Below, in pieces: positions 1,143 to 39,283 of a stretch of 64,000 nt of DNA. The stretch's first letter is position 1. Each line of letters opens with the position of its first letter. The translations under genes and the position numbers were made by a program. The stretch is taken from assembly GCA_033442325.1 (NCBI GenBank), contig JAWQFM010000021.1, positions 531,413-595,412 of the forward strand. The letters run 5' to 3'. This DNA comes from Salpingoeca rosetta. Its lineage: Eukaryota > Protista > Choanoflagellata. The notes under the pieces were generated by a model. It saw nothing but the letters and a program-made list of their open reading frames with translations, ran no database searches and was not told where the DNA came from.

Positions 1143-3119
1143 ATGATTTTCGACATAGCACGCCTCGCGAAGATGGGAGCGGTTTGCATGATCCTCCTGC
1201 TCCTGATCGCCACCCGCATCAACAGCACCACCACCACCACCACTGAAGTGCGTGCACGTGCACGCGTTGCAGCGGAAGAACGAGATGAAGCAGTGAACAG
1301 ACCAACAGGAGGGCCACAAGGAGGAGGGGCAAGAAGAAGAAGAAGAAGGGAGGTGGTGGGACAAGGGCAGCCAGCAGAGACATTCGGTACCACCACCACC
1401 TTTGTGCGGCTTGGTGATGACGGCAAGGTCGCTTTCAACGCCAACGGAAACATCAGCGTCCGCCCAGCCTGCGGATATTCCCTGTTCATCGATGGCGTTG
1501 ATGTTGGGCAGACGTTGCTACACTTGCGAGACAACTCCGCACGCATCGCAGGGCCCCTGCAACAAGACACCGCCGCCGCCAACTCGACTGCAAGTGCAAA
1601 CGCCACACGGCAGTGCAGTCCAAGCGAGAGTGGCAACCGCATTTACATGGACGCGGCCGGTAACCTCAACATCGTCAGCCCCAGGTCCGTTTACCTCTGG
1701 TCCGGCACGAACAACACCTTCTTTGGCGACCGCCCGCTGCTCGAGCAAGCGCAGCTCCTTGACACCGCGCTTCAGGCTGGTGGCGCTAATGGGTCAGCCA
1801 TCGTCAGGCACGCTACCGTGTCCGCGCCTCCTGCAGCCCCCGGTCACGGCCCAGACACTTCCTCCCCCAAGCGAGCCAGCACGGGAAACCTCTTTGCAGA
1901 CCTCGACTTGAACATGCACATTGTCAGCGACAATGGTATTGCACTCAACCCTGCACCAAACAGCACCACGCAAGTCCATGACCTCGACGTCGTCGCCACA
2001 ATCAAGCAAGTGGAGGAAGTGGCAATTTCTCGCGGCCTCATCTCTAGAAACGGCACCATCATTGCAACAACAACAACAACAACAACAACAACAACAACAA
2101 CAACAACAACAACTACTACTACTACTACTACTACTACTACTACTACTACTACTACTACTACTACTACTACTACTACTACTACTACTACTACTCTCACTCC
2201 GTGCCCAACGATTGATCTTGACTGCTCAGACCCAGCATCACGAGCGCTTGTCGCCCAAATGAGCCACTGCCCAGTTCGCGACGTCGTCGAATGCTGCTGT
2301 GACGAGTTCTCGGCACTGCGCCGCGTAACAGGGTCAGTCACCCTCTCCCCGTCCACAACAACCCTCAACTTTGGATCCATCACCAGCGTTGATGGCGATG
2401 TACTCAGCGTCACCTCCCGCTCCAGCCCGGGCGCCCTTGCCACTGTCGACTGCGGGCAGCTGCAAAGGATCGGGGGCAACTTCGACCCCAGCTACAACGT
2501 CCTCACAGCAATCAACTTTCGCAACGTCACGCGGCTGGGCCGATTCAGGGTCCTCAGCAACAAGCTCGCCACCCTGCACTTTGCCAATATTGAACGCGTT
2601 GATGGCGGTCTCCACATTGGCGCCAACCACCTCACCTCGCTCGACTTTGGGCAGCTCACACAGGTGAACGGCTACTTTGCCATCACCTTCAACCCGCAGC
2701 TCACGACGCTGGACATGGGCAACATTCGCCGCACGCGCGGGATGGAGCTCGGGTACAGCTTCAAGCAGATCTTGTGGCGCAACATGGAAAGGGTAGATGG
2801 AGGCCTGTACTTTGGGGACGGAGACTTTGAGCAGCTCTCTTTCTCTAGTATCACGCACGTGGGCGGTCCCATTTACGTTCAGCGCAACTCCTTGACCACC
2901 ATCAACTTTGGCAGCTTACAGACCGTCACCGGCAGCATCTACATTTACAGCAACAACCTCCAGGCTGTGTCATTTGGCAGCCTTGCATCCGTTGGAGGCA
3001 CGATTGATGTGCACGACAACCCGCCTCTCGCATTCCTTGACTGCAAAGGGCTTGCCTCGTGCCTGAAAGCCAGCACCACCCTCACCATGACCCAGCAATG
3101 TCCTTTGCCTTGTGCTTAA
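1143..3119 (+). CDS. Intronless secreted protein: signal peptide, polybasic site, three cubilin-N-like repeats, poly-Thr stalk, receptor L-domain-like repeats
   Basis: 658-aa ORF (start may instead be 1173 or 1188). Hydrophobic [14 protein letters not shown] at ~1332-1349, three related ~45-aa units, an (ACA/ACT)n Thr tract at ~2067-2192, then ~22-aa repeats such as [22 protein letters not shown]. No C-terminal TM segment. Confidence 0.8.
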
Positions 3120-3591
3120 AACTCTCTCTCTCTCTCTCTCTCTCTCTCTCTCTCTCTCTCTCTCTCTCGCACACACACACACACTGTCTCACACATGCAC
3201 ACACACACGCGCACACACACACACACACGTACACGCACATACACGCATACACACGTACACGCACATACACGCATACACGCACACGTACACGCACATACAC
3301 ACAATACTCCCACCAACTAAATAAATGAGGCCTGTACTTCAGCTTGATTTATGTTGGTGAATGCGACACACACGCATGCACTGATATGCGCACCGTGTAT
3401 GTTCAAGTTAAGGGGGCAAATGAAGAAATCATGACGGGCACAACGCACGTATGCACACACCCAATCGGGGTGACAACAACAAGCACAGCAGCACAAGGAC
3501 AGGACATGGCCAGAGGTGTCTCTTGTCCGCAAAGAGCAGTCCAACACACAGTAACACGCACGCGAACGATCGCACAAGTTCTCTGACAGCT

Positions 3592-36181: not shown

Positions 36182-39100
36182 TCACTCGTCATCCTGTTGC
36201 ACTGATGTGGGAACAGCGAGCGTTTCCACGTTGGTTGGCGCAACGTCAATGTAGCTGCCTTCATCTGCCTCGTTCTCAGCCACGTTCTCCACCGCCCCGT
36301 CCTTCTCACCATCACCATCACCTTCACCATCACCACCATCACCGCCATCAGCATCGTTCGCCTTGGCCTGCAGCGCCTCTGAGCTGCGGTACATGGGGTT
36401 CTGCTTTGTTGAGGAGTCGTTGAAGGCGGGAGCGTCATACAGCCCGGTATCCTCCGCTGCGTTGTACAGCGTGTTCAGCTCCTCCACGTCCCCGTTCTCG
36501 TTGTACATGGGATTGGAGAAGGACACAACGGGTCGCGCACCGGTCTTGCTGTCATCTGCGCTCTTCTTGCTGTCCGCGTCGCGCAGGGCGTCTGCCACGC
36601 GCGGGTTGCGGCGGCGGTTGCGCATCACAATCAGCACCAGACCGGCAACCAGCAGCACCCCGACAGCAGAGCCAACACCAACGCCAACCTTCTCACTGTC
36701 GTTCAGCACACTCCCGGACCTTGAGCCGGGTCCATCGTTATCATCATCATCGTCGTCGTCGTCGTCGCCATCATCATCATCATCATCGTGGTCATCATCG
36801 GCATCATCGTCATCAGCAGACGACAACACTGCCAGCACGAGCGTGCGCACCTGATTGTAGACCGAGTCGAACATGGCCGCAACATCCGCCTCATACTGTG
36901 CGTCGGAGAAGCTGCCATCAACATTGCACCGCAGGCCGCACCCGCCAATGCTGGCATAGAACGTGGTTTCCACCCTTGCCTTCCAATCGCTCAGGGGCAG
37001 CGGCGGTGATGCAAGCGCAGCGCTCGTCAGGTCGGCCAGCGTCACGGCGCGGGTGCAGTTGGTGTCGATGCCGCTGGTGAAGCTGAGGCACGTTGGCTCC
37101 TCCGGCTTGAACACGGTGACAGCGGCGTTGAGGAACGTGGCTAGCTCTGAGAAGCGCTCCGAGGAGGATGGTAGCGTGCACTCGGGCGATGTGTCGGATG
37201 CCGTGCACGCCTTGTCCCGCAACATGGGGAAGATGATGCTGACAATCATGCCACTTGCCGTTGAGGCCACCTCCCTTCGTTCAACAACTGCTGGCCTGAT
37301 GCGGACCTGGTCACCGCTGATCTTGGTGATGGGCGGGGTGCCGCTGAGCGTGTCCGCAATCAGGTTGCGCAGGGTGTCGTCGTTGTACGACTGGAACAGC
37401 CGCGTCAGCATGGTTGGTGGCAGCAGGTCGCCCACGCTAAACTCGACAGTCACCGTGGCTGTCTCCACGCGGTCGGCCGCATCCATGGCAGAGTCGAGGC
37501 CGGACAAGTACGCGCACGCGCTGGTGGTGTTCACCTGCAGGCACGCCTCGACCGTGCGGTTCCTAATGTGTGAGGTGGATGCCCTCCAAGCCAGCAGCTC
37601 AAGCACCTCGCGCGGCCCCGGGGCAAGGGTGTCGAAGGAAGCCACGCTGGCAATCGCATCAACAGCAATGGCGGGGCCCGTGACTCTTGCGGCAAAGGCG
37701 AGCGTATCCGACGATGGCGCATATGTGAGGTTGCAGCTCGCACCGGGGGCAAAGCGCAAGTCCGGCAGCACTTCTGCAGCAAGCCGGGTCATGTGGTGCT
37801 TGACGGCCTCGTTGTCTGCGCTGCCGAGGGCGTTGAGCTGGGGTTCCACGGCAGCCTGAAGCTCTGGCGACAGGCTCAAAATGGCCAGAGGCTTGAACGT
37901 GTACGCGACGAGCTTCTCTTTGGGCCTGCGGGCATCATTCAGGGTGCTGTTGACGGCCATGATGGCGAGTTCGTTCGCCAGCGCTTCGTCGGCCAGCTGT
38001 TGCTCCAGGGACGGGCACGTTGAGAAGCACACGCAGGCGCGCTGCTGGACGTCAAACTGTGCCTCCAGTTCGCACGTGAGCCGATCCATGCTCGAGTTGC
38101 CGCGAGAAAAGTGGATGCCGCTGCCTGACCCGTAAGCCGGCGACGACTGCAAACCACAGTGCATGAATGCACGAGTAAGGGGAAAAGCGGGGTTGGGAGG
38201 GAGGTTGAGGGAAGGTGGGAAGATGTAAGGAGAGAAGTGGAGGGTGAGAGGGTTCATGGCACATGGTACATGACACTTGTGTAAGGTGATGACATACAAT
38301 GCGTATGTATGTGTGTGTTGGGGGGGGGGGAGGTATGACACCCCCGTTGTGAGACAACACGAACAGACGAGAGATTAGAGTCAGGTGAAAGTGTCAACTG
38401 ACAAAGGATGGCGGGAGGTGCTCGTCGTTGGCGAGTGCAACGCGGACACTGTCCAGCGTCAGGGATGTGATTGGGGCGAAGGAGCCTGTGAAAATGTGGT
38501 ACGACGATGTCATTGGGAAGAATGCATCATCCTCCATGCACGGCGGGCGCGTGGTATTGAAGGACGTCTCCCAGTTCTGTCACAGCGAGGAAAGGGAGAA
38601 GAGCACATGGTGCGTGTGTGTGTTGTGATGGGTGTGTGTGTGTGCAGTGGACCGGGATTGGTGAGAGGTGTCATGTCGTAGGCTCGTGAGGGGAGGTTGT
38701 TGCTGAGGAGACTGATCAAGACAGGGGTACCCAATCTATCAGTCGCACGCACCCCCACACCCCCACACAAACAAATACTTACAAACACACACACACACAC
38801 ACACACACACACACACACACAAATATCACGTACCTTGTGGCAGTTAAAGTCGCACTCTGGGCGGTAAGTCTGACCACCGGTGAACACAGTCACGTCAGCA
38901 TCGTCCGTGTTGGCGTCGACATCGCTTGGGTGGGTCTTGTGGAACACCATCTGGGCACCGTGAGGTGCAAACTCCAGCACGCCGTTGTCTGCAAACACAA
39001 TTGCCTGCTTGGTCGCGTACTTGCCAGCATGGACGAGGGACGTGACTGGCTTCCAGCCATCAGTTTGGTGCTTTGGCCCAAAGTACACGGTTGTGGTCAC

Positions 39101-39283
39101 GGCATCGTCCTGGTTGTGGCCGACAACCACAGGAGCGCCGCCATCCCAGTTGGCGTCGTTGTTGAAGTTGGTGTTGCATCCGTCCTCTTTCCACGTAAAC
39201 ACGGCGCCATGCACATTGACGCACATTAGCATGCCAATAAGGAGCACCGCAGCGCTCACAGCAGCACCGCGTCGGGCCATCAT
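36182..39283 (-). CDS. Amnionless (AMN)-like type I membrane protein, ~862 aa
   Basis: Exons 39283-38834, 38576-38403 and 38146-36182, all phase 0. Signal peptide; W..NTNFNNDANW, IVFADNGVLEF, RPPCMEDDAFFPMTSSYHI and CVC match AMN (WVPNTDFDVAANW, LLPLDGELVL, RVPCRHDDVFFPPSASFRV, CVC). Acidic stalk, TM VGVGVGSAVGVLLVAGLVLIVM, tail with FSNPMY and QNPMY. Confidence 0.82.

Follow-up and report, generated by a model that had tools for sequence, protein, structure and literature searches.

The stretch of DNA analyzed here (the window) comprises 64,000 nucleotides of the choanoflagellate Salpingoeca rosetta, scaffold C21:531413-595412, and contains two genes that are the subject of this report. PTSG_07871 lies on the minus strand at 36185-39283, with its stop codon at 36182-36184, and encodes a protein of 862 aa that resembles amnionless (AMN). 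The other gene, at the PTSG_07860 locus and called gene B below, is an uninterrupted open reading frame (ORF) of 658 codons on the plus strand (1143-3119), with a secreted and anchorless product. An earlier sequence-only reading of the window had proposed that the two products form a cubam-like receptor, with PTSG_07871 as the AMN-like anchor and gene B as an anchorless protein with a cubilin-N-like triple repeat. Our analysis confirmed the AMN half of this proposal; the cubilin half and the pairing into a receptor were unsupported. Unless another sequence is named, positions are those of the window.

PTSG_07871 consists of three exons on the minus strand (39283-38834, 38576-38403, and 38146-36185). 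The splice sites were set by eye, and the spliced translation was identical to the 862-aa database protein. The mature N-terminal region (aa 27-235; 38068..39205, minus strand, spanning two introns) follows a signal peptide and was assigned to an AMN-type beta-helix 1, a beta-helix 2, and the start of a Cys-rich linker. The single transmembrane helix (aa 697-715, VGVGSAVGVLLVAGLVLIV; 36626..36682, minus strand) was located by a hydropathy scan and by translation. From the N-terminal region to this helix there are approximately 460 residues, roughly 400 of which have no assigned fold, and the protein carries an acidic juxtamembrane run. The tail contains two NPxY motifs, FSNPMY (aa 751-756; 36503..36520, minus strand) and, 38 residues past it, KQNPMY (aa 789-794; 36389..36406, minus strand), and also one YxxPhi motif, YIDV (aa 840); both kinds of motif are conserved in the family. 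In the databases the protein is named only "hypothetical/uncharacterized protein," and the searched collection held no precomputed Pfam domain for it.

Taken alone, PTSG_07871 gave sub-threshold signals, every one of them toward AMN. The Pfam Amnionless profile (PF14828) matched it with an E value of 3e-4 and 20.1 bits, and both ends of the profile were represented, since aa 139-191 aligned with profile positions 3-51 and aa 690-795 with positions 338-442. The best PDB sequence match was human AMN (6GJE_A; E=0.18), and in an ESM Atlas feature search Amnionless clusters ranked first and third. Word-based homologue searches returned only the database entry of the query itself, and one of them was dominated by the acidic low-complexity run.

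Relatives were recovered with phmmer, which, with aa 20-300 as query against 1.84 billion cluster representatives, yielded 29 proteins. The named ones are PTSG_12142 and PTSG_11361 of S. rosetta and proteins of Monosiga brevicollis, Hartaetosiga balthica, and Choanoeca flexa; the others stem from metagenome or transcriptome assemblies. When a profile of 26 choanoflagellate N-terminal domains was searched against the PDB, it matched 6GJE_A at E=2.4e-7, and the match ran across both beta-helices. Thus, the profile search that had been proposed for the AMN half had a positive outcome. Pfam Amnionless was detected at E<0.01 in 13 of 20 full-length family members, and half of the relatives scanned individually (5 of 10) exceeded the Pfam cut-off of 30.4 bits, the best with 45.2 bits and PTSG_11361 with 39.9 bits. 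In an alignment of 20 sequences, C233, C246, and C252 of the Cys-rich linker past beta-helix 2 were invariant and C248 was nearly so.

The family profile identified three AMN-type loci in the S. rosetta genome, located on C21, C10, and C13. When the genome was searched in six frames with PF14828, the sole match was a poly-Leu/poly-Ser artefact on C4, and the real AMN genes went undetected. Additionally, a weak match (E=0.004) to the Cys-rich/helix part of the family profile was observed at C26:123944-124117 (minus strand), inside an open frame of 813 aa; this locus may be a fourth, more distant AMN relative. UniRef lists PTSG_11361 under the automatic name "Protein amnionless" (UniRef100_F2UT64), and therefore an AMN family in choanoflagellates is not new to databases. 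In the literature searched, we found no paper that links amnionless to choanoflagellates or names these genes. We state with confidence that PTSG_07871 is a new, previously unannotated member of a family already in the databases.

The predicted structure points in the same direction. An AlphaFold2 model of aa 20-300, built with an alignment of the 26 N-terminal domains, had a mean predicted local distance difference test score (pLDDT) of 83.4 and a predicted template-modeling score (pTM) of 0.78. With this model as query, Foldseek returned 6GJE_A as the sole significant match (E=5.8e-9; next match E=0.29). VIA-align superimposed model residues 8-234 (protein aa 27-253) on AMN residues 20-223 with a Z score of 12.9, a root-mean-square deviation of 4.2 Å over 174 residues, and 22% identity. 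Independently of Foldseek, 48,161 representative chains were searched; 6GJE_A alone reached Z>=5, and the runner-up had Z=4.0. In the ESM Atlas, a chordate "Protein amnionless" cluster was the top structural match (template-modeling score 0.54 over 207 residues). According to the model, the mature N-terminus of PTSG_07871 is thus predicted to fold as two AMN-type right-handed beta-helices. The claim that the window encodes an AMN-like transmembrane protein with NPxY motifs is thereby borne out by sequence profile, predicted fold, transmembrane helix, and double NPxY tail, and the comparison with the human AMN structure that had been suggested as a check came out in its favor.

The cytoplasmic tail is a conserved feature of the family. 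All 23 full-length relatives scanned have one transmembrane helix near the C-terminus and two NPxY motifs in the tail, 28 to 52 residues apart, mostly FENPMY followed by x-x-NP-x-Y. The same layout is found in human AMN, which has two FxNPxF motifs about 40 residues apart. The family consensus of the tail reads FENPMY...GLYDEPAF...K-x-NP-x-YQS...GYLDV, and F751, N753, P754, Y756, Y778, D779, P781, N791, P792, Y794, and Y840 were invariant in the 20-sequence alignment. The FxNPxF motifs of AMN are read by Dab2 and ARH. At least 19 PID/PTB-domain matches were detected in the S. rosetta genome, and so readers of NPxY motifs exist in this organism. Since the NPxY tail is conserved in the family and PID/PTB proteins are encoded in the genome, endocytic uptake of PTSG_07871 is a reasonable inference. 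In the proposed mechanism, PTSG_07871, a type I membrane protein, would be internalized by clathrin-mediated endocytosis, its NPxY motifs would be read by PTB-domain adaptors in the manner of Dab2 and ARH on AMN, and the protein would act as an endocytic receptor or receptor subunit.

In human AMN, the hydrophobic center of the base on which cubilin docks consists of M69, L71, L77, L79, and F85 (PMC6283879). According to the HMMER alignment, these five residues map to columns occupied by L, I, V, M, or F in 26 of 26 choanoflagellate sequences; the PTSG_07871 counterparts are I95, F97, L103, F105, and F114. The model of aa 27-134 contains no helix of more than three residues, which would be consistent with an uncapped base of beta-helix 1. 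Such an uncapped beta-helix end needs a partner, and in animals AMN needs its partner to reach the cell surface (PMC6283879).

Gene B was likewise analyzed at the level of the gene model and of the domains. Its ORF is hydrophobic only at the signal peptide, its C-terminus does not resemble that of a glycosylphosphatidylinositol-anchored protein, and it contains nine N-glycosylation sequons. The C-terminal half is made up of a Cys knot, Receptor-L-domain-type repeats, and a Cys-rich end (2202..3116, plus strand), and it passed the Pfam profile Recep_L_domain (PF01030) with 27.9 bits versus a cut-off of 21.8 (E=2.8e-6). This was the only domain given by the Pfam scan, which revealed no EGF or CUB domains. 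Hence, hydropathy and the Pfam match agree with the earlier description of gene B as a secreted protein with L-domain repeats and without a transmembrane helix, EGF domains, or CUB domains. Upstream of the Cys knot there is a poly-Thr stalk of 42 residues (aa 309-350; 2067..2192, plus strand), which is spliced out in the annotated model. That model, PTSG_07860, has 490 aa and omits two in-frame pieces (1248-1427 and 1936-2229). RNA sequencing reads from three 2026 runs covered gene B at a depth of about 1-5, oriented as for plus-strand RNA in a standard stranded library. At 1972-2052, within the second annotated intron, the depth was approximately 2-4, similar to the flanking exons, and the reads, at this low depth, reported no splice joint across that intron. 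Therefore, the poly-Thr stretch is probably coding. For the first annotated intron, the RNA signal was obscured by low-complexity cross-mapping. A genome search with the L-domain region gave 202 matches or more, of which 150 were grouped by eye into about 45 loci. We conclude that PTSG_07860 is a secreted, mucin-stalked L-domain protein belonging to a very large gene family.

The cubilin half of the proposal concerned three stretches in the N-terminal half of gene B, all on the plus strand: repeat A (aa 84-137; 1392..1553), repeat B (aa 163-211; 1629..1775), and repeat C (aa 244-297; 1872..2033). If the first annotated intron is retained, a run of six arginines, RRRRRR (aa 64-69; nt 1332-1349), lies about 15 residues upstream of repeat A; it resembles a furin-type site, yet it is located within a purine-rich repeat that may be non-coding. 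Local alignment of the repeat pairs against shuffled sequences gave p=0.066 for A and B, p=0.21 for A and C, and p=0.009 for B and C. The three stretches were not significant as repeats, and the triple repeat, a pattern perceived by eye, was not confirmed. Pfam gave no match to the N-terminal half at E<=10. Cubilin 26-135 (entry 6GJE) was part of the PDB copy searched, and at E<=10 there was no PDB match for this half, for the module profile described below, or for the N-terminal half of B' (an 803-aa ORF on C10, at 303278-305689 on the minus strand), although a short divergent domain could escape such a search. AlphaFold, run on aa 80-310 as a single sequence, gave a pLDDT of 31.7. The resemblance of the gene B N-terminus to cubilin is thus visual, a relation between them is not supported, and the claim of a cubilin-N-like triple repeat fails for lack of a PDB match, of significant repeats, and of EGF or CUB domains.

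Two weak genome matches of the gene B N-terminal half pointed to two small L-domain proteins on C4, both secreted. Their N-terminal motif can be written as (signal peptide)-VV-L-EED-x-x-G-x-LHINT-...-PVFVNGVDV-helix. With a single query, this module gave 40 matches in the S. rosetta genome, and with a 14-sequence profile it was detected at 150 loci or more; it has no Pfam name. The module-bearing ORFs are mostly 430-540 aa long (examples are L029:454-1647, minus strand; L019:1495-2664, plus strand; and L027:1531-3000, plus strand). In about a dozen that were inspected by eye, a predicted signal peptide is followed by the module, a coiled-coil-like stretch, and then either a beta-propeller (DUF6923, DUF5074, or SBBP) or L-domain repeats. 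The module, with its beta strands, NGxDV motif, and helix, probably drives oligomerization.

Repeat A of gene B aligns with this module. A hidden Markov model (HMM) of 13 paralog modules, from which gene B was left out, scored 9.6 bits on aa 114-137, which is only the second half of repeat A, and detected neither repeat B nor repeat C. Repeat B has a visual-pattern resemblance, and repeat C aligns with module 2 of B'. In an ESM Atlas feature search, the gene B N-terminal half (0.88) and the L029 module (0.77) shared their nearest cluster, of 104 aa; scores below 0.9 are leads only. At best, the N-terminus of gene B may be a diverged, tandem version of a module seen so far only in choanoflagellate sequences. 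The earlier reading had cautioned that both genes could be members of larger families, and this proved justified for the L-domain region, for the module, and, with three loci, for AMN.

We also compared the surroundings of the AMN paralogs. The distance between gene B and PTSG_07871 is 33 kb, and since three assembly gaps intervene (15734-15833, 26236-26950, and 29344-29443; neither gene is touched), this value is a scaffolding-dependent estimate. Among the AMN paralogs, PTSG_12142 is the closest, with 38% identity over the N-terminal domain; it lies at C10:~266-269.6 kb on the plus strand, about 34 kb away from B', and the two are tail to tail, which is the arrangement found in the window. 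B' encodes a secreted L-domain protein with several modules: a signal peptide is present, no transmembrane segment is evident by eye, and the ORF carries three weak instances of the module, the same Cys knot, and L-domain repeats. The N-terminal halves of gene B and B' matched each other at E=8e-4 in a two-sequence blastp, and this similarity would not be significant genome-wide. The C21 and C10 gene pairs were compared for signs of a duplicated block: no intervening genes are shared, and only generic, non-collinear kinase matches were found. The arrangement is compatible with two linked genes having been duplicated long ago; as a post hoc observation, it raises the odds of a pair slightly. 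The third paralog, PTSG_11361, is on C13. Nine kb upstream of it, at C13:35147-39970 (plus strand), there is a gene for a 1607-aa L-domain protein with its own transmembrane helix and an NPDY motif in the N-terminal cytoplasmic region. The M. brevicollis AMN relative has neither an L-domain gene nor a module gene within 10 kb.

Linkage in eukaryotes tells little about function. Module and L-domain genes are so numerous in this genome that a neighbor of this kind within 35 kb is unremarkable; their abundance and the unrelated intervening ORFs (see below) agree with the caveat in the sequence-only reading that the linkage is weak evidence. A complex prediction was made for PTSG_07871 aa 27-300 with three copies of the consensus-like L029 module, not of gene B. 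It gave ipSAE values of 0.10 and 0.05 versus a mark of 0.34, with a pLDDT of <50 for the partner fold, and it speaks neither for nor against binding. Only three CUB-domain matches were present in the S. rosetta genome, and by this CUB-domain search no cubilin-like gene was detected.

Nine ORFs of at least 300 aa between gene B and PTSG_07871 were scanned against Pfam. Five had a family match (Med25-type VWA, DEAD-box helicase, thymidine kinase, mitochondrial carrier, and PQQ-like beta-propeller), four had none, and the scan revealed no relatives of gene B or PTSG_07871 among the nine. The gene adjoining gene B (3592-5964, minus strand) encodes a split protein kinase domain fused with a catalytic domain of the adenylate/guanylate cyclase type (Pfam E=1.3e-55); its ORF runs through a probable intron. 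Long (TG/CA)n microsatellites are found throughout the window at intron starts and between genes, for example at 38780-38833, and give rise to many spurious long ORFs of Cys-Val or Thr-His repeats. Outside the span from gene B to PTSG_07871 there is one more assembly gap, the fourth (55017-55116; 100 N).

Taken together, the data make it likely that PTSG_07871 is a divergent paralog in a choanoflagellate-conserved AMN family and that PTSG_07860 is a secreted L-domain protein with a loosely module-like N-terminus. Several observations weigh against this conclusion. The Pfam score of PTSG_07871 is below the gathering threshold (20.1 versus 30.4 bits). The SEA domain of AMN was not detected, the full-length family profile matching only 6GJE_A chain positions 8-157, which correspond to AMN residues 27-176. 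The endocytosis of the protein is read from its tail motifs. Finally, conservation of the five base hydrophobics is permissive and not diagnostic, because the same residues belong to the core of the beta-helix, and thus it does not prove a docking face.

Given an AMN-type protein in this organism, the question is what it does with its beta-helices, and the accounts differ in the partner that they assign to it. It is quite possible, if a little short of an even chance, that PTSG_07871 acts alone, its enlarged ectodomain binding ligand or matrix, its beta-helices being structural, and both window genes being functionally unrelated. The approximately 460 residues between the AMN-like part (aa 27-235) and the transmembrane helix would offer room for binding sites, and much of this region is absent from human AMN, the whole crystallized ectodomain of which comprises residues 20-357 (PMC6283879). 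Moreover, the scanned intervening ORFs are unrelated, and our analysis detected no partner of PTSG_07871. Against a solitary role stand the surface delivery of animal AMN, which requires the partner, and the open beta-helix end, which is thought to need capping (PMC6283879); in addition, the residues of the putative docking face are conserved in the choanoflagellate family. The same argument, that open-ended beta-helices need a partner (PMC6283879), would favor gene B as the missing subunit, with its three repeats forming a single-chain pseudo-trimeric beta-helix of the cubilin type that docks on beta-helix 1 of PTSG_07871 to give an endocytic receptor. Gene B is anchorless, its repeats are separated by linkers of about 25-35 residues, enough for folding in cis, and the PTSG_12142 and B' genes are arranged likewise. 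We nevertheless consider this account very improbable, as neither the N-terminal half of gene B, nor the module profile, nor that of B' matched cubilin 26-135, the repeats were not significant, and the AlphaFold model of this half had very low confidence. Furthermore, the C21 and C10 pairs have zero intervening genes in common, L-domain and module genes are too abundant for proximity alone to say much, and the M. brevicollis relative has no such neighbor.

Alternatively, proteins of the AMN family could anchor beta-helix-capped homotrimers of the single-module secreted proteins and not gene B specifically. In the dozen or so proteins inspected among those from at least 150 loci, the module is placed between the predicted signal peptide and a coiled-coil-like stretch, as in mature cubilin, and the C-terminal heads (DUF6923, DUF5074, or SBBP beta-propellers or L-domain repeats) are of binding type. 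The scarcity of CUB domains and the lack of a cubilin-like gene imply that AMN here is without its animal partner, and beta-helix 1 has a conserved hydrophobic base. Conversely, the module profile had no sequence match to cubilin, binding to the AMN family is putative, and the module may be a plain oligomerization domain of secreted lectin-like or matrix proteins. We therefore regard this possibility as unlikely. A broader conjecture, which we offer with little expectation that it holds, is that the cubam architecture is older than cubilin: choanoflagellate AMN proteins would be shared endocytic anchors for interchangeable anchorless heads docked at the open base of beta-helix 1, and the heads would be trimers of the module proteins or a single-chain pseudo-trimer (gene B and its C10 paralog). 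If this were true, animal cubilin would be one surviving head of an older system of anchor plus heads.

A conserved, multi-copy AMN family with an intact endocytic tail in the closest living relatives of animals means that amnionless predates animals. Because choanoflagellates have the AMN family and no cubilin-like gene was detected in the S. rosetta genome, the AMN anchor predates the one cargo subunit known for it. Whether the AMN beta-helix of a bacterium-eating protist has a docking partner at all, and which, thus becomes a question open to experiment in S. rosetta, for which transfection and genome editing have been established. The secreted proteins that share the N-terminal module, from 150 or more loci, make up a large and unnamed share of the predicted secretome, and solving a structure for them would be worthwhile.

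A comparison with known systems places the two genes as follows. Like the L1/L2 domains of EGFR and the insulin receptor (PF01030), the C-terminal 300 residues of gene B are L-domain-type beta-solenoid repeats; unlike these receptors, gene B has no furin-like Cys-rich domain, transmembrane helix, or kinase, and it is part of an expansion in S. rosetta. With the cubilin N-terminus (residues 36-135; 6GJE chains B-D), gene B shares that it is secreted and anchorless and that short beta-strand motifs and then a helix are predicted near the mature N-terminus; its single-module relatives continue into a coiled-coil-like stretch, as cubilin does. It differs from cubilin in the absence of detectable sequence similarity and of EGF and CUB domains and in its three putative tandem copies per chain instead of one. 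PTSG_07871 deviates from animal AMN in its length (862 aa versus 442 positions of the Pfam Amnionless model, with about 400 extra ectodomain residues), in the use of NPxY and not FxNPxF, in the conserved LYDxPAF and YxxPhi motifs, and in the acidic juxtamembrane run. Furthermore, unlike the human situation, three paralogs are present in the S. rosetta genome and no cubilin was detected there. PTSG_11361 and PTSG_12142 have the same family membership and architecture as PTSG_07871, and PTSG_11361 passes the Pfam cut-off, whereas PTSG_07871 does not. In line with human AMN (6GJE chain A, PF14828), PTSG_07871 combines a signal peptide, two predicted N-terminal right-handed beta-helices with conserved hydrophobics at beta-helix 1's base, a Cys-rich linker, one transmembrane helix, and two NPx[F/Y] tail motifs about 40 residues apart.

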